From: Cercozoa sp. M6MM
Taxonomy: Eukaryota; Protista; Endomyxa: Ascetosporea
Assembly (NCBI GenBank): GCA_040357565.1
Contig: JBDODJ010000048.1
Strand: one strand, 5' to 3'
DNA: 64,000 nt
The notes beneath the pieces were generated by a model. That model searched no databases, had not been told where the DNA came from, and was given only the letters and a program-made list of their open reading frames with translations. Shown in pieces: positions 34 through 32,603 of the stretch. The position numbers and the translations under genes are program-made. Each line of letters starts with the position of its first letter. Positions within the stretch are counted from its first letter, which is position 1.

Positions 34-446
34 ATGTCTCGCTCGCAGTTGCAGCTGCGAGCACTGTACGTTCGTGTGATGGAACGTACAACAGAGAAAT
101 TTGTTTATCTTGTACGTCATGATACACGGCCGCACCCCTTCCCCGTCCCATGGTTCGCCTTGTGTAGCTGCGGTCAAGAGGATACTCCGATGACGAATGC
201 CACACCGTGGCAGCTCTCATGGCACAGAAGTGGAAGACACACATGGAGCACTGTGGCGCAGTTCTGTCGGAATCTGAGGCCCAACAACTCAACAGCAAAC
301 TGCCTCCTCTTCCGTACCCCTATAATACTGATTGGATAGGATGTTACGCAACCCCTTGCTTGGGCAGAATTTCTGGTCGCAAGAGGTCGCGCAGACGATA
401 CCTTTGCGCCATCGCGAACCTTCCTTCAGAGTTTTATTTTTTCGTG

Positions 447-477
<31 letters not shown>

Positions 478-3317
478 GTGTCACACGTTAATATCGACAG
501 CAAAGAGGATTCTGAAGGGAGTGACGATACCGGTGACTATGGTCTCATGATGCATACCAAACGCCGCTCCACGGTATTCATCTTTGCGAGACTGATTTTG
601 TGGATTGTACCGCATCTTTATAGTCGACAAATCCACTTCATGACGAAACTTATGGTAGCGAATTGGGGAGTGGCACACAAGGCAGCATCAAGTGCGTTCA
701 TTTGCCTTGTGGTTTTTGTTGTGCTTTCTATGGTGCACCTTTGGGCAGGGACACTGAGTCGGTGCTGTCGCAGAAGTTAGAGCGGCATTCAACAATGTCT
801 TCACTCGATGTAATTTTGCTTTCGGCTGTTTTCTGGCAGCTGTTATATGTTTTTCGTCAGCACAAGGCACTTGTCCGACGGCCTGTATTTATGAGCGATG
901 ACTCGCCTGCAGTGCCTGATTTTTCTGGTGCGATTCCCTTCTTCTCCTTTTGGTACAAATCAACGAGTGTGTTGGTGCAGCTGTGTCCGAGGGCCAATCA
1001 GCGAGTGTGAGTCTACGCAACTCACCTCGGAAGCAGCGGCGAGACCTGCAACTCAGTTCCTCTCTGGCTTCTTCGCGAAGCAGCATGGTGTGCTCTTTGT
1101 GTTTGCCTTCTATCTCGTTGTGAGTACGCGTGTGTTTCGCTAAAGGAACCAATGCCCCAAAAACCAAAGCCCGCACGTGACACTGACGCAAGCACTGACG
1201 TACCGGCGACGGGTACACTCTTCTCGTGCACCGCGCGGGTCTGTATTATAGTCGTGTTACAGCGATGGACTTGTTTGGGAGCGACGATGATGACGATAGC
1301 AGTGTTGACGAAGAGGAGATTCGTGGTGATCCCAATTGTGTTTTTACATTCGTTGAACGAATGTTGGTGCAGAACGAGGAATCGGTTCCAAGTTGCGTTT
1401 TCGTCCCAACTGGCGCGACGGTTTGCCTCGTCCTGAGCAGGTTGTCGATTTTGACGCTTGCACCTTTGCTTCATTTTTCTTTATCCTGTCCGCGCATGTG
1501 CAGGACAGAGGTGCAATATTTGCTGCGAAAACAACCAATTTTCTGCACTGCCTTGGCACGGTAATCTTCGCATTTGTTTGTGATAAATCCCGACATAACG
1601 CATGCTGTTTTTGTCTTCACAGGTGCACAAGACGACGGCGTGGAGGAAGAAGCGAACGTTCATTTTGAAAATAAACGGTGGCATCCTGTCTGTTGGTAGA
1701 CTTCCCTTTTGGTGAATGCGGCGAGTGCTTTTTCGCGTTATGCAAGAAGCGATCGTAGGAGGCCGGGAGCATGCGTTCGCACCCCCATCGAAAGTGTTCA
1801 CACACGGCATCAAGCTTCGCCTGCCTGGCGACTTTCAGCACACCGAGTGGGTTTACGTTGCGAACTTGCGAATATGTCTGTGTGCTTACCCTAGACTGTA
1901 GAAACGAACAACCGTTGGACGATGTGCCCATTCTGCCACTCGGCGATCCTGCTGCAGCTGCCAGTAGCATCTTTCGCATGCTTGCATTTATATGAAAACC
2001 AAAACAAAATTTGTGGTTGTAGAGCTCCCTGCGACACTGCGACTGCGGAATGTGATTGCCCATGCCAAAATAGCCAACGGAAAGGTTCTCCTTCGAGAGG
2101 TATGTACTGTCATCACGACCTTAATTAATTCGGAAAAATCTTTACAGGGTGCTTTGAGACTTCCTGGCGGCGACTACGATCCAAAAATCGTGCAGCTTTT
2201 TTCTATCGCTCAGGCCTTGTGTTGTGATTTTTTGTGTGTAGGCGGCTCCTTTGCTGTTGAGATTTCGCAATCCCAGAGTCACTGTCGGCGTTCAGAACAG
2301 TGCGGAAATTTTTGCGAGCGGTGCGAGTTCGCTTGCTGCCGTGCATCTCGGTCTGCGTAAAGCTGTACAGCCACTTGCTCGTACGTGATGACCGTTTCGT
2401 ACTGTTGCGTCGATGTGTGCACAGGCATACTGGCTAGAGTGCGCGAATTTGTTGCGTCCAACTGCTTCCTCGGAGGACAGCGGAGAGCCTGTGCAACTTA
2501 CTTGGGACAACGCTCGCATTTCGAACATCATGGTTTGTTTGATGCGTGTAATATCGTGTGTCTGTATGTCTGTGTACCTGTGTAAACAATACCGTTTCAC
2601 ATGTTGTCTATAGGCAACCTTTACGATGCCAAAGCGTATTAACGTGGAAAAGCTTAGTCGAGAAGTACACGATGCGGACGTAATCCCCTCCAAGTCACCT
2701 TGTAAAAGATAAAATCACCATATGTTTCTCTGTGCGCAGTACAATGTCGATTTTAAACACTGGGCGGAGTTTAAGAGCGAGACGCCACTCAAATGCAACG
2801 CCCAAATCTATCCTTCGGTATCGTTTTAATTATTTGAGGTGTTGTGCATCCTGTCGCTACGCCTGTCCCATTTCTGCAGGGCAAAATCGTTCTCAAAGGC
2901 AGCAACTCCATCTCGCATGTGCGTCGATGCGCTGAGTTCATGCAAAAGCTACTGGCAGGGTACTAAGTATCCCTTGACCGATCTGAGTCCATTTTTGTCT
3001 TACTGTGTACCTAGGTATACGATCGATGACGCTCGTATCCGGCGACTCGAGAGGGCACACGAACGCGAGCGACTTCGCCATCAGCTGCGAGTACTCTTGT
3101 TTGTCGTTGTGGTTAAGGTCATCGTTGAGCACACTTTTATTGACTCAGTTGGTCGCAGATCGACCTGCCGAGGTATGTGTTGTTCTCATCTGTGTCACAC
3201 ACAATGTTCACCTGAGGGTAATAGTTTGGTGTCGAGTTGGACTCCGACAACGACGATGATGACGACAGTGAGGGTGACGAGTTTTTAGACAACGAGGTAC
3301 CTCCTCCTCACATTTGA
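34..3317 (+). CDS. Multi-exon (~24 introns) gene: TFIIA large subunit (alpha/beta, TOA1/GTF2A1-like) apparently fused in frame to a divergent TATA-binding-protein-like core
   Basis: Spliced N-terminus MSRSQLQLRALYVRVMERTTEKFVYLLRSRGYSDDECHTVAALMAQKWKTHMEHCGAV matches the TFIIA-alpha helices. After an S/D/E-rich linker, TTNFLHCLGTVHK...FILKINGGILSVGGREHAF matches TFIIA-beta. Two TBP repeats follow (LRNVIAHAK...YDPKIAAPLLLRFRNPRVTVGVQNSAEIFASGASS; ARISNIMATFTMPKRINVEKL...NAQIYPSGKIVLKGS), then an acidic tail. The traced GT-AG introns are phase-consistent. Stop is at 3317, or 3419 if one more intron is used. The fusion junction is inferred. Confidence 0.72.
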
Positions 3318-3780
3318 CAACCGTATCGGCTTGCGTCGATATCCATTGTTATATATTTGATGAGTCAGCTGTCCCAAATGTCAATCGCGCTGCCGCCGGA
3401 CCGCTTTTTCCTTGCGTGAGGTTTCGACGTTTCCGAGGCAACCAGCGTCGTCGGTGTGCGATGTAGGCATCCCTACATCTACACTATACGTTGCGTGCAA
3501 CTGAACGAAGAAAAAAGAACGTCGCGTAGGTACGCGTCTTGACATGGACAGCTGCCGGCAGGTTCGATCGGATTATCGAAACACATGCCGGTCGATGTCC
3601 GATCAATCACGAGCGGGCTTTTTCTGGCTCGCGTGTATGACAAAAATGTTACGTCGGCTACACGCGACGGCGGTGTTTTCAGTTCACTTCAGTACCGGAC
3701 GTTGAGTTTTCCTCTAGTTTTGCGCCTCGTTTAGTTTTGCGCATGGCACTCGCCGACAATATATCTCGGATGCTCAGGAA

Positions 3781-4040
3781 TCATCTATTGGCCTCAAAGC
3801 CGTACTTTTGCAGGCACTTGGCATAGGAATCCCACACAGCGTCGCATTCCGAAGAGTCCTGGAAAATTTACACAACGTGTCGTGTCGGGTGAAACCAAAA
3901 TGCGACGATACCTTGCCATTGAGCAAGAAGCACTCGTCACGTACGCGTCGCTCATCCTTGCAAACACAGCACGGGCCCTTGACTTTCTTCGTCGTTGCTG
4001 TTTCTTGCTGCTGTTGCTGCTGCATCTTCCCGCACGACAT
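3781..4040 (-). CDS. COX17: Cytochrome c oxidase copper chaperone COX17 (2 exons, intron 3859-3911)
   Basis: KGPCCVCKDERRVRDECFLLNGK|DSSECDAVWDSYAKCLQKYGFEANR* contains the CC copper motif plus twin CX9C. Start is 4040 or 4025. Confidence 0.9.
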
Positions 4041-4308
4041 GTTTTCGCTTCTCTTCTGCACACAAAATCAGAAAAAGTCACCGCGGCGCAAACAAGATCG
4101 ATTCCAACATACACGTACTTGCCCGCTCAACACTTAATTTGGAACGTAGCGCGTACACACACAGCTAGAAATGTGCAGATGGCACAGGCACAACTGGGCA
4201 GCAGTTGTCGACGAAAACAAAGCAATTGTAGCCACCTCGACTTGATCAAAACACTTTCGACACAACTGTGCCCTGTAGTTTGATGTGCAGCCCTCAAGTT
4301 TAACAAAT

Positions 4309-19936: not shown

Positions 19937-20973
19937 TTACTCGCTGTCCTCGTCGCTCTCGGCAGGCGGCAGCACACGCAGCTTGACGCTCTCGTCGACA
20001 TCGGCACCAAGGAAGGAATCGCACATCAAGTAGACCTGTGGCATAAGAAAATGTTCCGCGTACTGATCAGGAAGGACAGGGATGTGTGAGAAAATGCCGT
20101 TACCTTAAGGTTGTACTTGCCCTCCTGCTCAGGTGCTTCGAACGGCACCTTGACGCGCATCGGGTTTGAACGGAAAGCGACCTTCTTGACGGCAAGCAGC
20201 GCGTTGCTGTACAACAACGGATACATGGTGCAAGATGACTGACAGACGCACGGCCACAGAACAGATATAGAAACGAGTACGTCTTGGTGTCGCCAACCAC
20301 AACGTACCAACCTAAACACATACACGCACACACATACCACATACATACATACACACACGACATGTACAACGTAGAAAAGAGATGGCTTAAAGTACTCTCG
20401 CGGTGCTCTCGCGGGAAGCGCGGTGCGTGCACCACAGGCGGCTGCATTGGACGCGGACCCTCTGCACACGCAGATACACAAAATGTGAGGTCGTTTGAGA
20501 CAACACTAAATGCTGGCGAATACACAACATGCTACCACGCTCTTCGCCCTCATCCTCGTCCTCTTCCTCCTCATCATCACGCGACAGGATGCACTGCAGC
20601 ACGCAGTCCTCACCTGCAACACAGCATGCCATCACAGGAACTTTCTGGTTCGATACTTCAATGCAGTGCATGTACCAGCAGGCACTTCGTCATCGGCAAG
20701 TCGGCATTGGAGTTCCACCTGTGTTCACAAAACAGGTTATGACAGGGGTAAATGACACGAAGACAACGAAGGAGGATTACGTTCGGGAACGAGTTACAGA
20801 CTTCGGCCACCTGCTCGATCTGCTGCTCGGACAAACTGCAGCACACAGAACCACACATACACCGACACAAAAATACAATGGACATTCAACATGGGCAAGG
20901 TACTCGGAGAGCACTTGGTCGCGCTCGTCGTCCTTTTCCTGTAAACGTCATCAGTACAAACATCGTGTGCGTG

Positions 20974-21018
<45 letters not shown>

Positions 21019-24000
21019 GTGTGTACCAGCAGGTCGAAGACGCCCTTGATACCGAGCTTGGTGGCACGAGCAGCACTGTGACACACAGGGAGTCAAGAGA
21101 GTCAAGTCATGATGCTAACGAAGCCATCGCCTACCGCTCCTTGTCGAAGTACGGCAGCTGCAGGAGCGGCGAGTCCGTGTCCCACTGGCCCTGCGGTCAA
21201 GCAATGACACACACGCACATCAAACAGCAAGGTAGCGGTGACGACAATAGGTAGGTGTGACACAGGAGAAAGAGTACCTGGATGAGCATCTGCATCATCT
21301 CAATTGTTGCCAGCGCCGGAGTCAACCAGCCTACATGACATGCATACATAAGTGCACCAATGTACACACTGGTACGAAGGAAGAGGTTACCGTTCGACGA
21401 CAGGACGTTCACCATAGCATCCAACAAGAGCACCGCACGTTCAACGATGTCCTCTCTGTACGAACAAAACATATTACGCATACATGCATGCAAGCAAGGG
21501 TCTGAAAGGGGCTACCGCTGACGCGAGGCGGCGCGACGCAGGCCGATACGCGACATGTGCGACTGCAGCAGCACGTTCACCTGCAGCGGCACCAGGTCGG
21601 CCTGCTCCTTCTCCTTGGCGTCGAGACCAGCGACTCGGTGCGGCTGTACACACACACATACACACACAATGACCCAGCGCAGGGGGGCGGGGGGGGGGTG
21701 ACACGGCAGAGAGAACAACACAGTCAGCAGAGAGCACAACACAGTCAGCAGAGAGCACAACGCACCAGGTGCTTGGCCAGCTTGCGCAGGGCGATACGCA
21801 GCTGCTTGGCCGGATCCTCCTCGTCGTCGGCCTTGTCGCCCAACAACTTGGCGCGGTCGCTGTCACCCTGCACTCGACACATACAGAGTGCGTGACACAA
21901 CACAAGACAGAAAGGCACACCACAGAAGAAACAGGGACAGAGACAGGAACAAGGACAAGGACAGGGACAGGGACACACCGTGTCGAGAAGCGACTCAAAG
22001 TCGGCGGCGCAGGACAGCACCTGCAGGATGCCGCGCAGCTTCTGCGTCGGCTGCAGCAGCTCGTCAAAGGCTTCGATGGTCTCGTACGACACACCAAAGT
22101 TGTTCGAGATACGGCCTATTGAGGCGACACTCACATCATGCCCAAACACTCCGTCCGTCCATCCGAGAACACAGTGGGGGTGTACCGAGGTTGAGCGGCT
22201 CAATGCGTTCCTCGGCCTCTTCATCCTCCTGCAGACGAAAGTCATGTCAATCCAAGTCAGCAGTGTGACACAAAAACAGAATGCGCACCATGGCATCCTC
22301 GTCGGCACGGATGTCGATGCACTTGGCCTCCTGCAGTTCCTCGAGTGTCTGCTGCACCAGTTCCGACAGGTGCATCGACACAACCTCTACGCAAAAGCCA
22401 GACTCAGCCGATACTTTTGGACCAGTGTGTCCACATACAGATACAGACACAGACACAAGTGTACCCGGCTGTCGGCCAGCGAGGTGGTAGTAGTTCGGGT
22501 TGCGCGGCAGACGCGTGAACAAGAATGACCAGGTCTACCGTACCCTCTCCCCGTAACACACACACACACACACACACCCACCCACCCACACCCACCCACA
22601 CGCACAGTCAGCACAACAAGAAGCGAAAGCTACCAACAGGTTGACGGCATCCTGCATGCTCTCCAAAGTGCCGGCACACACCTCAGACAGGAAGTAGTCG
22701 TGCAGCGCCTGCGGCAGCGAGCTCTCCACCGGCACAACCTGCTCTCACAGAGTGCCTACAGCAGTCGCTCAGATCTGTAACACGCATGGTACCGGCTTCT
22801 GCATGAACTGCGCCAGCAACTCACGCAGCGACGGCGAGCACAGCACCTGCGCTCCCATAACACCCACACACATACACCGACAAGTCACATATGCACACAT
22901 ACACCGACAAGTCACATGTGAGTTGTACCGAGGCCGCCGACTGGGCACGACCCTACACGCTCACACGTACACACAGATACCACAAGGTGGACAGCACAGG
23001 AAAACGATGTACCAGCATGCGGGCGACGTGCGCCAGCGCGAGTCGCAGCGAGGCACCACCGTCACTCAGCACCACCACAGCCTGAGCCACCAAACAGCGC
23101 ACACTCAGGAGTCGGATAGGAGACGAGGCAGGCTCGTACCTGGTCAGCACGCAGGTCGTACGGCAGCTCGTGCGAGGCGTCGAATTCGACGGCGAGCACG
23201 CGCACGCGGCGACGGAAGAACAGGGCCACCAGGCGGTCCTTGTCTGTGCAAGACATCCCGTAGACCCAGTGTCACCCTCCCGCAATGACACACACACGCG
23301 CACGCGCGTGCGGAAGGGAGGGCCTACCAAGCTGCACCATGTCGTGCGTCCAGCACGCGGCACCACAACGAGCGTACTAAAACAGTATCAGGCGATCAAG
23401 GAAGGGACAAACAGCGTCAACACAGACGCACATCTTGCATAGTGCAGGTACCTGCAGGGACAGGTCGTCACTCTCGTTGTACAGGGCCTGGAGCGACGGG
23501 TCCTTCTCGATCTCCTCGTCCGACGCACCGCCGAATCGCTACATTCCGCCATCGCCATAATTTATCACGCGTACCTTTCTACTTCTCTTCAAGGTGGCAA
23601 GAGTACCTGCGGGTCGTCGTCGCGAATGGCGCGAGCCACGAACTGCTTGGCCACGCGGCGTGCCATGGCACCTGTTCCACGACACATATAGCCATAGATA
23701 CAAGGGAACATTGTGTCGCTGAGGGTGACATAGGCGAACGCACCAGTCGGCACGAACACCAGCAGCGTCGGCGCCGGCTTCTTGCCGTCACTCTCCGGAA
23801 CCTGTACCAGCACAGAAACAAGCTCACATACATATACAACAGCTTCCGTGTCCAGAGGAAACACACCAGCTCATCGGCCTGTCGCAGCAGGGTGGCCACC
23901 ATGGCACCACGACGCGCCTGTCCAACATAGCTCGTTACGTACATGCACGCGCACACATTGATATCTATGTAGAGCAGGGTATACGCGAGTGCTCATCTGC

Positions 24001-27000
24001 TCAAAGCCGGCGTTGAGGGCCAGACGCAGCGGGATCGGCCGCGTCGACGGCGCGAACACAAACGTGCCCGTGCGAGGGTCGGCACCCAGCCATGTGCCTG
24101 AGCGATACTCACCGATTCATGACACCCACCCCACAGACAGACAGTCAGACAGGCAGGGAAATAGAGTACCCAGGTCATGTGCATTGGAGACACAGGCGGC
24201 AAGACCAACGAGTCGCATGTGCTCGTTCTCCGCACTCTGCAGACCTCGTGAAAACAATGGTACTTCCCCAACGATAAAAGAAAGACGGTACCTCGGCAAT
24301 GTAGCGCATGCGCGACACGGCCACCTCCATTGGCGGACCGTCCTTGCCACCGAGGAGTTCCAAGTCGTCCAGCAGCAGCAAGTGCTGTCACACACACACA
24401 CACAGTCAGAGATCTCAGTGTGTTTTTGATTCGAACACACCGCGCGCTGCAGTCTCTCGGCCGACCGGCGGTGCCAGTTGCGCGACAGCAGTTCAAAGTC
24501 TACACACAGATACCACACGCGTAAGTGTGAGTCTAAACCGACCCCGATCTGTTTCGAAGTTAAACTGACCAGCAGCGGCGGCAACAATGATACGGCACGC
24601 GTTGAGTGTGCGCACGTCTTCCGCGCGGTCGGCGCCACTGTACAAACGCGCGGACGTACATGCATGGACAAAAAAATAGCAGAGAAAAGCTTACGCCAAC
24701 AGGCCAACCGAGATGCCCAGTGTCTGCTGGAACTTGAGCTTCCAATCCACGAAGCGCATCTGCGCCAAGTCACGACGAGATGTCAGGTAGACCACGAAGG
24801 CGCCGTCCTCATCCTCATCTGTACACAGAGTGGCATCCGTAAAAACGTACAACAAGGTAACCAAGCACAGACACATGCAGTGTACCGTCAGAGTGACCAG
24901 TGCCGAAACGCTCCAGCGCACGGAAGATGGCCAACTCGGCCAGCAACGTCTTGCCTAAAGACAACAAGTCAAAAAAACCAAGAAACACAGGGACATAGAT
25001 GACGATACCCGAGTTGTTAGGCGCCGCAATCAGCACGTTCTCGTCCGTGTGGCACAGAGCCTTGCGGCACTACACACACACAGACATATGAAAGGCCCAA
25101 ACAGCACACTGGCACATCCATCCGTGCTTGGACAAGAGGACCTGTGTTTGCAGGGCGTTCAGTCGGCGCACGCCGCACTGCGCGTAGCGAGTCTGCAGCT
25201 CGGCCGGCATTACCTGTAGCACACATAGACATAGACACATAGACACACAGACACACACACGCACACATCGAACGTGTTTTCCCCAACACACACAAAGGTG
25301 ACCACGTAGACGGTACCTGCTCGGCGCTGGGGCCAGAGAGCGACACCGGGCGAATGTCGACCAGCTGCGTCGGGGCCGGGTCCTTGTCCGGCTACAAACC
25401 AGCACCGACACATTACATAGGCACACATTGCATAGAAACAGACGTACCAGCAGCATGTGACGGAAGCTGACAGCAACGACGGTTTCAACACCGAGCCATC
25501 GATCCGAACGCAGTCGCACAAAGTACTGCGGCGGCATCGGCGACTACACACAGACACGATAGACATTAACGCTTTCCGGATGAACACACATGGGATAGGG
25601 TACCACGATGGGCACGCAGAACACAATGTCGTCGCGTGTCGGTCGGCGCTGCGACAGCAGGCAAGTCTGGCGGTACAGCAGCGTCGCGCCATCACCGTCC
25701 TACCGAATGTCCAAGTGTGCACATATACACAGCTATACCAGACAAGAGGATGGAGTTACCTCGACCCACAAGTGGAAGGACTCGACGCAGTTCTTGCCGT
25801 GCACAGCCGGGTGCCACTGGAAGTCGGCCTGCCCAAAGTGATTGTCACACATGTGTCCACTCTTAGTATACTTGGAAACACACCTGCAGAGTCACGTGGA
25901 CGCGCAGCAGCGATCGCGTGATCGGTTCGACCTTGGCATCGACACGCACGTTAGGCACGAGGTGCACGGCACGGTGGATGTCCTTGGCCAGTCTATAGAC
26001 GCATACACACGCGTACAAGTGTACACCATCCAAAGATATCTTTACGGAAGCAAAGAACCTGGGGAATTGCAGCAACTCGCCGAGTGCAGCCGGCGTGAGC
26101 TCCAGCAAACGCTGCACAGAGACACGGCGTTGGACTGCAACCCAATTCACACGCACACTGAACAAAAGCAGAGCGTACACGCCAGTCAAAGTCGAGTTTC
26201 TCGAGTCGTCGCACCACATCATCCGGCTGCACACGTCGTGAAACATAGCATATGAATGAACAATCCAGAGGTCGACACACAAGACGGAACGTACAAGCAG
26301 GTTGGGCGCATCGACATCATCAGCCACGGCAGCCGCGCGGATGGAGCGCAGCACCTGACGCAGCGGCGACTCGCAAGCCCACTGACGGTGCTCGACACTC
26401 AGCGCAGCGTCCAGTGCGACTACACACGTGTGTTATGTACAGTGTCATACATGCGAGGAAGACACACACAAGGCGAAAGGGAGTACCACGCGCGGCCTGC
26501 GCCCAGCGACGCTCGAGCGCGACGGCGAGCATGGCACGCATCAGTCGGGCCGCACTCTGTGTCGATGACAACATAAGATACAGAGAAGAGACGAACACAA
26601 GGGAGGGACAAACGCACCTGCGTGACGTACGTCATGTCCGACGACAGGGCGTAGTTGTCGAGTCGCAGACGAGCCACGTACGACTGCAGCAGCACGTTCA
26701 CCTTGGCCTGCGCAAGTGCCAACATACACACACACACACACACACACGCACACACACACACACACACACAAATTGACATGACGGAATGGGGATAGGCTAC
26801 CTGCGCCGACTGGGCATCGCGCAGCAGTGGGATCGGCACCTTGTCGGCCAGCTGCGCCAGCTCGAGACGCTCCTCCTCGCGCACACTCATGTGACGGAAC
26901 TCCTCGGCCAGCGTGAACACGTCCCACATCTCCAAGTCGTGCATGTGCGGCTTCAGGTGCTCGCGGAACGTCTTCAGCGTGCCGTAGGTCAGGTAGAAGT

Positions 27001-28218
27001 TGGCAGCCACACTGCAGACACAGACATACAATGTGGTGGCAGTGCAGTGTGTTCACAATGGTCACACGTACCGACCAAGCGACGTCGGCACCAGGCGGCG
27101 CGTCTGCTTGTCGTAGCGAATCAGACCGGCGCGGTGCAGTTCCTGCCATATAGTAAGCATCATGTACACTTACACTAGCCCACGCGAATGAGAGGTCGCA
27201 GCTACCACAGCAGCAGTGTGGACGAGATCGGCGCGGAACGACTTGAGCTCGGCGTCCTCGGCATCAGCAACGCCTGTGCATATGCACCCCAGTATGCACT
27301 CCAGTGAGCCAAACAAAAGAAAAGCTACCGTAGAGCGACGGGTTCTGCAGCATGCGCACGAACAGGTACGTGTACGACAGCCAGTTGACGGCCTATCAGA
27401 CACAACACACACACACAATTGGAGGTACAGACGACAAGTGGGGGTAAGACAAAATACCTCGTCGACGTTGCGCACGAAACCGGCCACGATCTCGGCGTTG
27501 AGGAGGTCGCAGAGACGCGAGACGAGTTGCGACTCTGCACGTGTACCCAGTCAGATGGTATGGAACCAGTGACAAGCAATGGTACCAACAGGCAGCTGTT
27601 CGTTGATGAGCGACATGTAGTAGCGCAGTTCACTGTACAAAAACACACACATATAAGCACACTTAGTCATCCACAAGCATGTCCAGGCAGGAGAGGCAGC
27701 AAGCTACCGATGCGTGGTGATGATGGTGCCGTCACCCTGCTGATCGAGGCCGGGACGACCTGCACGGAATGGCACACCCCAAGTTAATTAGCACAACATA
27801 AGGGCGACACAGCACAGCCATGGTGTACCAGCACGACCGAGCATCTGCAGCACGTCGAGCATGGAGAGCTCGACCCAGTCGCCCTTCTCCGGGTTGTAGA
27901 CCTTGGTGCCCTTGATGATGACAGCGTGCGCCGGCAGGTTGACACCCCATGCCAGCGTGGCCGTCGACACCAGCACCTGTACAGGCACACGTGAGTAGGT
28001 ACAGATGTCACTAGGTTCGGAAGGCACAATTAAGGGGGCACACCTTGGCATGACGGTACAGGAAGAGATCTTCCACGAGACCACGGTCGTCCTTGGTCAT
28101 ACCGGCGTGGTGGATGGCGACACCGCTGGAGAGGATCTCCTTCAAGTGCTTGCTGTGGCACTCCTCCACTGTCTCGCGAAGGATCTCGCTCTAACAACAC
28201 ACACATACACTCACTCAA

Positions 28219-28277
<59 letters not shown>

Positions 28278-31200
28278 ACACACACACACCCCCCAATCGG
28301 GGGGGGGGGGGTACAGTGTCACTGTCGGGCGGCACGAGACGGGTATAGGTGCCGTCCTCACGCGCGCGTTCAACGATCATCTTGGCCACGTTGAACGTGT
28401 CCTATGCACGAGCGTACACGTACCACACACCACAAGGAACAAAGAGAAAGCGGAGGCAGGCACCTTGCGCGAGTGCACGAACACGAGCACCTGCTGACCG
28501 TTCTCGGCGTTCTGCTTGACCAGGTCGTAGCAGCTGCACAGATATGCAAATAGGCATGCCCAACAGATTGCTTCGGCAAGGCGAAAGGTACACGTCGTTC
28601 ATCATCTGGAACTGCTTGTAGGGTCGCTTGAGCGTCACACCCTACCATACAGACACATAAGACAGCAAACAGGCAGGTGTGAGCCACATGAATGCAGTTA
28701 CCACAAAACGCTGCGTGAGCGGCACGGGACGGTACTCACTGCCAAAGTGGTGCAGGCCCGTGTCCAAGTCCACCTGCACGAACCGAATATCGACGGCCAC
28801 AACAGCTGTGCCAAGAAAGGGGAGCGTACACGGAGGAAGACAGCGACGTCGCGGTAGTTCGGCAGCGTGGCCGACAGACCGACGATACGGGTCAAGTCGC
28901 CTGTTCGTACAGCACACACACATACAGGCAGACATATAGGTGGTGGTAGAATGTGACCGAATTACCAGTGTCCTCGGAGTGACGCAGCGAGCGCGCAACG
29001 ATGGCCTCCAGCACGGGACCACGCTCGTCGTGCAGCAGGTGGATCTCATCGATGATCAGCAGTGTCACACGCGACAGCAGCGTGCTGCGTGCACCTGCAC
29101 ACACGAACACAATACACAAACACATGCACACCCTTAACCCTCTGCGCAACATCGAAAAGACACGCGTACCGAGACCGTCCTTGCGAGTGACGACGTCGAA
29201 CTTTTCCGGAGTCGTCACGATCACGCTCGACTCGTCGATCTGTTGTCTGTTGACGAGAAACAGTAGCGGGGAAACGAGTGGACAAACAGCATAACAAGGG
29301 GTACCTGGTGAGTTGCTGGTCACCCGACAACTCGCGCACCTTCATGCCGTAGCACGCCAGTCGCTCGCGGAACTTGAGCGTGATCTCACGCACCAGCGAC
29401 TGCACACAGCGCGGACATCATCCTCAAATACAGAGCAACGCAGGAAGGAAACAGCAAGGATACCTTCATGGGTGCCACGTAGACTACCTTGAAAGCTTGC
29501 AAGAAGTCGTCCTGTTACACATAACAACAATATCAGCACACCAGGCCCAGGCAAGGTGAGTGTTTCGGTTAGAGTACGCGGTTGCGATGGCGGCCGACCT
29601 CGCGCAGCATCGAGAGTAGGGCGACGTTCGTCTTACCGGCACCTGCACCACAGGGAATTTACAAACCACCTCTGTTCATACTGCAGTGGAGATACCGGTG
29701 GGAGCACACACGAGCATATTCTCGGCCGAGTTGAGAGCCGTGCCGAACACCTGTCACAAAAACAAAAGATACACCACCATCAGACAACAAACACACTCGG
29801 AAAGGAGATGCACCTGACTCTGCATGGCGTTCAGAGCAGCCGAGTCGCCGAACTTCTCCGTCAGGTCTGAGAAGGCTGGTTGCGCCTGTCCAGGGTGGTA
29901 GGGGGGGGTAAAAGTGAAAGGAAATTAATAAGGAGCACCGCGACGTACCCACTTCGGCAGCGACGAGATCTTGACAAGCTCCGACGCGTCGACGCGCTTG
30001 GTCTGCGAGCGCGGTACCTGGTACTCGATCCAGCCCTTGTGCGGCAGCTTGACCGTGCCCTCGGGCAGCGTGAAGTCGCCGGCATTGGTCTGCGTGTGGC
30101 CGCCCTCGCCAAACTTGAGTGCCTCCAGGTTGAGCATCTGCACCCCGCGTGCCATCCAGATTACAGCGGAGAGTTTCGACAAGGACACCAGGAACGTACC
30201 TGAGCAGGCCGCGTCTTCATCCACTCGGGGCCCTCCGTGGTGACCTCCTGTGCCACGGCCACGTCCTCGCTCTCCTCCAGCGTGGTCTCGCGCTGCTGCA
30301 CGCGCTCCTGCAGCTGCTTGGCGTCCTTGCTGAGCTTGTCCTCCATGGCACCGACGGCGGTGCTGCCCATGCTGGCAGTGCGCAGTGTGGCCAGCAACTT
30401 GGCCAGCGTTGGGTCGTTCATCATCTGACCCTACGTGGATGGACATGAGATAGAACAGACCAACAGACAACAGACAGAACAGTAACAGACAGAACAGTAA
30501 TGCTGTACCTCAAGCAAAGCACGCTGCTCGCGGTCACCCTCGGCACGCGCCAGTTTCATCGCCCACAGCACCTGAATGCATATTTGCATATTGAATGAAA
30601 AGGCACACGATTGGAAGAAGAAAGTGCGCTCTACCTCGCGGGCGTTGTCAACCAGCACCTGGAGGAACTCGGCCTCGCCTGCAGCAGGTCACATGATCAC
30701 AAAATCTCACACAGTACAGCAAAAAAACAGTCGAAAGCAAGGCTACCAGACGGCAACAAGGCGAACAGCTCGTTCTCGAGGCCGCGCTCATCGTCGAGGT
30801 TCTCCTCAATGATCGTGAACGCCTCGTCGGCCAGTTTCTGTGCCTCGGCCGGGTCCTGCAAACAGTACAAACATCGGAAAACAAAAAAGGCATTGCGACA
30901 AATCGCTGGAAAATCGGGCAAAAAGGTGATGGCCCTCGGATTAGCATGATCGCTTATATCAGCACGGTTTGGTTGATAACACCTCAGAAACACAGGTGTC
31001 GAATGTTGTCGTCATAGAGTCAACCCAAAAATGGGAACACAATTTTTATCTCGTGAAATCTCATCATCCAAATTCATACACGTCATGGGTCAAACAAAAT
31101 TTTGAAAACCCAAACCAAGCAATAACTGGCTGTCAGGCAAGAGAGCGAAAAATGACACAACACAGGGCAAATCCTCAGGGAAACCGAGTTTGAGCAAGAA

Positions 31201-32603
31201 CTCGAAAAAGAAAGGAAACATACGTCGATTTCGCAGTAGTGGGTAATCTGTCGCTGGAGCCAGTGCGCGCCAACCTCGCGAACGTCAAAGTGACCGCTGC
31301 CGGTCGTTGGACTGGCCAGAGCATCCTTGGAAGCCTGCGGAAAGATACAGTAAAACAGTCTGTCTCAGGCAAAGGTGGCAATAGACGCACCTGGATCAGC
31401 ATCTGTCGACGTTCCGTCTCATCTACGTTCAACATACGTAAGAATCAAAGACCAAATGTACAAAAACAGGGGGAGGGTACCGACTTCAAGCTCTTCCTCC
31501 TCACCGACGTGCTCATCATCAGACATGGCCTGCAAATACATACGTACATGTTAACGCGACAGGGGCAAGCGCACTCATCACGGGGGGGGGGGGGGACCTT
31601 ATCCTGCAGGATGAATTCGTGGCCGTCACGCAGTGTGCGAAGTCGCTCGTCACCCTCAGTAACGTCCTGCAGATGGTACACAAGATACACAGATTCTGGC
31701 GCCGACATGGGGACAAAAAAAAAGTCTCCACAATACCTCTTGGTCGTCAAGCTGGAGCGGAATGATCTTTTCGCCCATTTCTTCCTTCATCTCACCCTCT
31801 GCACACACACACACATGCGGTACATTAACAGCAACACTGCTTGCACTCAACACCAAAAGCGTACCAGTGATTTGTGCGGCCGTGGTGGCGGCCGACTGGA
31901 AATCCCGAATCTTGCGCAGCATGTTCTGCAGACGCGAGTACTCGTCGCTACAGTCGATACACACACACGAACTTTCGAAAACGCAAGGACACACTAGGCG
32001 AGAGGTACCTCTGCAGCTTGCTGCGCTTGCCAAACAAAAGCTCGTCCACAAGATTCTTCTTGTCGGCAGGCGAGAACCCTACCATGTCAACAAGAATATC
32101 AATCGAAAGACAAACAGGTACAACGACGAGCAAAGTGTACCAGACTCCTCGTCCTTCATGATGTGCAGAACTTCGTCAGCAGCCGAGGCGAGGTCATCGT
32201 GCGACTACAGAGACGCACAGATACATCAGAAACATCAAGTATTCAGGTACAGGCACAACAGCGTACCGTAAGCTTTGTGTGCTGTGACAGGAAACTGAGC
32301 AGCAAACCCCAGGCTTGTCTTGCCTCCTACGTACACAAACACAGCGTAACGCCACGTATTACACAACAGTGCCTATGAACAAGTAAACCTCATTGGTTGG
32401 CACATAGTAGTCCTGGAACTCTGCCGAAGCCACTGATACGACACCTCGCACCGCCGCCTACGCGCACAAGGACACAACTCAAGTTTATCAAGATTAGACA
32501 AGTGACAAAGCGAACCTGTTGTGAAGCACGTGAAGCAGCAGCCGCGGCCTGCTCGCGCGCATCGTCACCACGCTCCTTGCGGTCGCGCTTCATCTGCGAG
32601 ACA

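Follow-up and report, generated by a model that had tools for sequence, protein, structure and literature searches.

To our knowledge, every eukaryote studied to date keeps TFIIA and the proteins of the TATA-binding protein (TBP) family as separate subunits. The closest described systems are partnerships between such separate chains: in metazoa, TBP-related factor 2, or TLF (TBPL1), forms a stable complex with TFIIA or ALF, and the trypanosome factor TRF4 works with a divergent TFIIA. Covalent arrangements involving TBP have been made by hand, including a yeast TBP-Toa2 fusion that was used in genetics and the engineered Brf1-TBP and TAF1-TBP chimeras that appeared among the PDB matches of this study (6cnb, 4b0a and 6e16). 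Here we describe a gene at positions 34-3419 of a 64-kb stretch of DNA (hereafter the window), the first 64 kb of contig JBDODJ010000048.1 of Cercozoa sp. M6MM, whose assembly comprises 23.6 Mb in 2235 contigs. This gene may encode a very divergent TFIIA large subunit and a TBP-like core in one polypeptide, and we put the probability that it is one gene and a true TFIIA-TBP-like fusion at about 55%.

The comparison with these systems is one of kind, since no homologue beyond generic TBPs came up that would point to orthology with TRF2 or TRF4. As in TRF2/TLF and TRF4, the TBP paralogue in this protein has changed intercalating phenylalanines and would act together with TFIIA, and the first-stirrup motif D-Y-D-P-K is kept here; unlike those factors, which are separate polypeptides, it is predicted to be a single chain with a linker of 21 residues between its two parts. 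The engineered fusions indicate that a TBP joined to a partner within one chain can work or fold as a unit, and the M6MM protein may resemble them in this respect. In contrast to the man-made proteins, however, its TBP-like domain is divergent, and the partner tethered to this domain would be the TFIIA large subunit. Full-text searches of the literature gave no description of a natural TFIIA-TBP fusion, in agreement with an earlier note on this DNA, whose author likewise knew of no natural example. Such a fusion would thus be new if real, although its gene model has already been deposited.

The gene model is indeed public in GenBank, though unnamed, and is therefore not new. Locus MHM6MM_002336, labelled "MAG: hypothetical protein [Cercozoa sp. 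M6MM]", is the same spliced model in three isoforms, and the fused reading frame that the earlier note had assembled from the letters is exactly the one that this annotation predicts. ATG 34, the quoted exon texts, the introns 1847-1901 and 1964-2022 with the 62-nt exon between them, TAG 1899-1901 and ATG 1992 are all present where they had been placed. The longest isoform, P0005 (MES1909630.1, 645 aa), maps exactly onto the window from ATG 34, and its coding span (34-3419, + strand) consists of 26 exons of 24-146 nt and 25 GT-AG introns of 47-81 nt, with the stop TGA at 3417-3419. When exon 2242-2385 was searched against 1.84e9 representative proteins, it retrieved a 635-aa protein with 98% identity over the exon, whose cluster holds the three isoforms of MHM6MM_002336; besides this protein itself, the search returned two matches, both to repeat proteins. 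The isoforms differ in retained introns near the 5' end and in nothing else, and all three use the introns 1847-1901 and 1964-2022, reading ...FQHTE|NEQPLDDVPILPLGDPAAAA|KLPATLRL... across them. Gene models of M6MM were produced by funannotate train/predict/update with RNA-seq and -jaccard_clip (PMC11069148; PMC13746701), the latter an annotation setting intended to split run-on transcripts. M6MM introns average 82 bp in length and 13 per gene (PMC11069148; PMC13746701), so that the 25 introns within 3.4 kb (34-3419) are about twice the published mean number. The 5' splice sites of the gene are very loose past the GT, continuing as GTA in 15 of 25 cases, GTG in six and GTT in four.

On sequence grounds, the TBP-like core is real and belongs to the two-repeat TBP family. 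It occupies exons 16-22 (2023-2959, residues about 382-573 in the PF00352 and PDB alignments). Against PF00352 of Pfam, P0005 scored 54.7 bits (cut-off 22.9) in two stretches, the best of which covers residues 492-571, while exon 2242-2385 by itself scored 12.1 bits. A PDB sequence search with P0005 returned TBPs down to E 2.5e-7, and the other match was one chance-level FGF receptor chain (E 0.33). The two TBP repeats that had been read from the sequence are therefore borne out by both searches. Downstream of the core, exons 23-26 (3015-3416) encode, according to the mapping and the predicted model, a C-terminal helix (residues 577-601) and the acidic tail DSDNDDDDDSEGDE.

This domain differs from TATA-binding TBPs in several respects. 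In HMMER alignments to the human and Sulfolobus TBPs, the positions of the intercalating phenylalanines are occupied by A and Q in repeat 1, and by K (directly preceded by an F) and Y in repeat 2, so that at least three of the four intercalating positions that mark TATA-binding TBPs are altered. The first stirrup retains D-Y-D-P-K, whereas the second stirrup, on the TFIIB side, reads Y-N-V-D-F in place of the Y-E-P-E-L-F found in TBPs. Because of the altered phenylalanines and the diverged second stirrup, the domain is more probably a TBP-related factor that acts independently of TATA than a second TBP, as far as its sequence indicates.

A canonical TBP is indeed encoded elsewhere in the genome, on contig C735, where PF00352 scores 101 and 78 bits and all four phenylalanines are kept. 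The fused domain shares with this and other canonical TBPs the two-repeat saddle scoring above the PF00352 cut-off. It is, however, only about 24% identical to the C735 protein (a value obtained with a slightly incorrect splice of the canonical gene), and it departs from canonical TBPs in its A, Q, K and Y at the phenylalanine positions and in its second stirrup. Beyond such generic TBPs, no homologues of the TBP-like domain were found in the protein collections or in PDB. The canonical gene has one short intron (1682-1736 of the C735 locus) inside the conserved T-G-A-K-S turn, and the donor of this intron, GTAGCT, is of the same weak type as that of intron 1964-2022 (GTAGCA). A third TBP-family gene lies at C200:12471-15575 on the - strand (about 1195-1623 of that locus), with PF00352 scores of 38, 27 and 23 bits on three exons; a stretch of N, either masked or withheld bases, interrupts its domain midway.

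The upstream half is probably a TFIIA large subunit, although a very divergent one. Exons 1-2 (34-111 and 168-313, separated by intron 112-167) form a TFIIA-large-like N-terminus, for which a two-helix hairpin is predicted (residues 3-29 and 34-54). They are followed by the low-complexity middle of exons 3-11 (368-1440), which is predicted to be disordered (predicted local distance difference test, pLDDT, about 30) and which contains the basic run RKRSRRR (residues 79-85, about 378-398), a feature that had been noticed before, and the acidic run DDDDD..DEEE in exon 1263-1325. The TFIIA-large-like C-terminal segment, NFLHCLGTVHK...GGREHAF...DFQHTE, is encoded by exons 12-14 (1504-1560, 1623-1695 and 1759-1846) and was recognized by motif resemblance. 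The segments at both ends resemble the TFIIA-large motifs of human and yeast, a likeness that serves as a lead and not as a test. The order of the parts also fits TFIIA-large, with predicted helices, a basic run, an acidic run and, in the genomic reading, a short segment at the C-terminus that closes with EW. In these respects (predicted helical N-terminus, low-complexity acidic middle and the short C-terminal ...EW) the gene resembles GTF2A1 and Toa1. Unlike these canonical large subunits, it gives no match to PF03153, its annotated splice drops the terminal tryptophan and runs into another domain, and P0005 contains no Q[V/L]DG taspase-type site, the last point as previously noted.

The partner of TFIIA-large is also encoded. 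The gene for TFIIA-gamma lies at C54:11560-14670 (PF02751, 43.9 bits), and its last coding exon (1498-1620 of that locus) encodes 41 aa, DAKLMTYRHVEDVWTFVL..., and was readily detected. By contrast, no other TFIIA-large candidate was found in the genome, where a six-frame PF03153 search matched only low-complexity sequence, in the middle part of the model. A search for separate genes, which the earlier note had proposed, thus recovered the canonical TBP and TFIIA-gamma, and no separate TFIIA-large. The TFIIA identity of the upstream half is not confirmed, and draws on the motif resemblance, the layout, the two predicted helices, and the absence of another large-subunit candidate beside an encoded TFIIA-gamma.

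Several results weigh against the fusion, and a first group of them concerns this upstream half. A match to PF03153 had been suggested as a check of the TFIIA call, and the call fails it: hidden Markov model (HMM) searches of the exons, P0001 and P0005 gave no PF03153 match at E <= 10. PDB sequence searches with the whole protein and with the three TFIIA-like exons returned no TFIIA chain, and the search of the protein atlas for look-alikes gave no usable match. The AlphaFold2 single-sequence model of the fused protein is poor (mean pLDDT 42.5), although within it the two N-terminal helices reach pLDDT 64-78. A predicted complex of residues 286-362 with the C-terminal exon of TFIIA-gamma gave an interface score (ipSAE) of 0.01, which speaks neither for nor against binding and lent the TFIIA assignment no support. 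In addition, neither a relative nor another case of the fusion turned up in the 1.84e9 representative proteins, in JGI metagenome contigs or in a collection of 5.8e9 clusters, the last of which was searched by word index with P0005 residues 290-580, with residues 286-362, and with an alignment of P0005 and the canonical TBP.

These results could be explained if the gene were single but its upstream part were not TFIIA-large at all, that is, if the protein were a TBP paralogue specific to this lineage, extended at its N-terminus by a long and mostly disordered region whose likeness to TFIIA is fortuitous. Long N-terminal extensions are common among TBP paralogues (PMC7221094). However, a fortuitous likeness would have to extend to both ends of the upstream part, with a predicted helical N-terminus, an acidic run and an EW-ending segment correctly ordered and spaced, in a genome where TFIIA-gamma is present and another large-subunit candidate was not found. 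Moreover, exon-wise HMM searches are insensitive in this genome, since the N-terminal domain of TFIIA-gamma itself escapes the six-frame Pfam search. We consider a TBP paralogue with a non-TFIIA extension quite unlikely.

Returning to the fusion, the two halves are joined by two short introns and the exon between them. Junction intron 1 (1847-1901, 55 nt, GTGGGT...TGTAG) and junction intron 2 (1964-2022, 59 nt, GTAGCA...TGTAG) flank a linker exon of 62 nt (1902-1963), which encodes NEQPLDDVPILPLGDPAAAA. Their lengths agree with those of the other 23 introns of the gene (47-81 nt), as does the length of the linker exon with the exon range of 24-146 nt. The splice-site scores of the junction fall inside the range of these 23 introns, near its low end, and the acceptor at 2022 stands at the 97th percentile of decoys. 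The composition of the region was assessed with a codon-versus-intron log-likelihood ratio (LLR), which is +0.43 +/- 0.21 bits per codon for the exons of the gene and -0.23 +/- 0.22 for its introns. The linker exon, when held out, scored +0.51, while the two junction introns scored -0.1 to -0.4 (-0.2 to -0.4 for the first), and the unspliced tail of the TFIIA-like part (1851-1898) scored -0.23, about 3 standard deviations below true exons. The 3' untranslated region (UTR) of the gene, however, is equally exon-like in composition. The exon-like composition of 1902-1963 was accordingly rejected as proof of coding, and an exon-like linker is also compatible with UTR sequence.

The phase match of the two introns, which had been advanced as an argument for the fusion, does not go beyond chance. 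Under limits typical of the gene (introns of 45-85 nt and an inner exon of at least 20 nt), a stop-free in-frame splice path arose in 222 of 300 shuffled versions of the linker DNA (74%), and phase matching is therefore weak as evidence; under looser limits, the real sequence itself permits 18 stop-free in-frame paths. We also considered one long intron reaching from 1847 or 1851 to 2022, and rejected it because it leads into the wrong frame or to a stop.

An alternative hypothesis is that two adjacent genes on the same strand were merged by the annotation. The TFIIA-large-like gene would then end just past '...HTEW', either at the unspliced TAG 1899-1901, with the retained intron 1847-1901 reading ...HTEWVYVANLRICLCAYPRL, or at TAG 1965-1967 after splicing from donor 1851 to acceptor 1901, and the TBP-like gene would start at ATG 1992 (MKTKTKFVVVELPATL...), within junction intron 2. 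The M6MM genome is very compact, with genes making up 84% and intergenic DNA 6% of it and a median intergenic distance of 162 bp (PMC11069148; PMC13746701), and merged gene models and run-on transcripts are for this reason a real possibility. ATG 1992 shares the reading frame of the TBP-like core, and no stop interrupts this frame from 1968 onwards. Together with the chance level of the phase-matched paths and the UTR-like composition of the linker, these features count in favour of two genes. No in-frame methionine lies between residues 245 and 497: ATG 1992 is the only possible independent start of the TBP-like part, and splicing out 1964-2022 leaves this part without a start of its own, a point in favour of one gene.

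Against two genes stands the space available to them. The gap between the two coding regions would be 90 nt, or 24 nt if donor 1851 is used, in comparison with the median of 162 bp, and a 3' end, a promoter and a 5' UTR would all need to fit into it. Furthermore, the sequence 1964-2022, in which the second gene would start, has the strong acceptor mentioned above, a typical intron length and an intron-like composition, and the unspliced tail in which the first gene would end resembles an intron and not coding sequence. All three public isoforms run on past the junction, and their origin in a pipeline that drew on RNA-seq lends indirect support to a single gene. Taken together, the junction evidence leans towards one gene over two, and a merged annotation appears somewhat unlikely.

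A further argument for two genes comes from the end of the TFIIA-like segment. The codons GAG TGG ('EW'), read directly from the sequence at 1845-1850, form the family-typical end of TFIIA-large, as in the human and yeast sequences. The terminal tryptophan of TFIIA-large is conserved, and in yeast it matters for the TFIIA-TBP contact. In the fused protein it is missing because donor 1847 sits inside GAG|TGG, so that the chain reads ...HTE-N... in all three public isoforms; the EW end is intact in the unfused readings only. Four bases downstream, a GT at 1851 scores much like donor 1847 (3.1 against 3.47 bits). Splicing from this GT to acceptor 1901 would keep the tryptophan, shift the frame and end at the stop TAG 1965-1967, while retention of intron 1847-1901 would likewise keep it and end at TAG 1899-1901. 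The loss of the tryptophan can thus be read in two ways, as a weakness of the fused model or as a hint that the gene switches between a free and a fused TFIIA.

Turning to the surroundings of the gene, M6MM, a marine amoeba currently named Lemnamoeba sinaloensis, belongs to the Apofilosa (Rhizaria), and AC/GT repeats are abundant in its genome and break its short-read assembly (PMC11069148; PMC13746701). (TG)n microsatellites occur at 1-27 of the window, where the contig begins, and at 451-476, within intron 431-500. The first of them is accounted for by the tendency of AC/GT repeats to end short-read contigs in this genome, and the second is translated as (CV)n in isoform P0001. On the - strand, an open frame resembling COX17, with a CCxC motif, lies at 3774-4061 of the window, convergent to the TFIIA/TBP-like gene, so that no more than a few hundred bases can separate the 3' ends of the two. 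Further along, the 12 kb at 20000-32000 are unlike the rest of the window in having a raised G+C content of 0.54-0.59 and an A-over-T skew of +0.15 to +0.26 on the + strand.

If the gene is a true fusion, its main mRNA would encode a 645-aa protein consisting of a divergent TFIIA large subunit, a linker, a TBP-like saddle, and a helix with an acidic tail. The TFIIA part would supply the N-terminal two-helix half of the four-helix bundle, a disordered basic and acidic middle, and the C-terminal half of the beta-barrel, and the Pro/Ala-rich linker of 21 residues would tether the divergent two-repeat saddle to it. The TFIIA-like ends may pair with the separately encoded TFIIA-gamma, and the TBP-like domain would thereby be held beside TFIIA in what might be regarded, by analogy, as a covalent version of the TFIIA-TRF2/TLF partnership.

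A free TFIIA-large, if one is needed, would need to be made from this gene as well, through retention of intron 1847-1901 or use of GT 1851. A more elaborate proposal is that this sole TFIIA-large gene acts as a splice-controlled switch that sets the balance between two modes of initiation. Use of donor 1847 would then yield a covalent, TATA-independent TFIIA-TBP-like initiation factor lacking the terminal tryptophan, and retention of the intron or use of GT 1851 would yield a free TFIIA-large that keeps the tryptophan and serves as the partner of the canonical TBP. We offer this switch tentatively and consider it unlikely.

Were the annotation a merger, the locus would be of lesser value: it would comprise a divergent gene for TFIIA-large and, 24-90 nt away from it, a third paralogue of TBP, within a genome that is very compact. 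If the fusion is true, it raises the question of how TFIIA is supplied to the canonical TBP when the only large-subunit gene is fused. A natural single chain of this kind would represent a Rosetta-stone-type fusion for the TFIIA-TBP interaction, and it would mean that a TBP paralogue can be permanently committed to TFIIA. We know of almost no transcription biochemistry in Rhizaria, and a true fusion would also offer a simple handle on TATA-independent initiation in this group.

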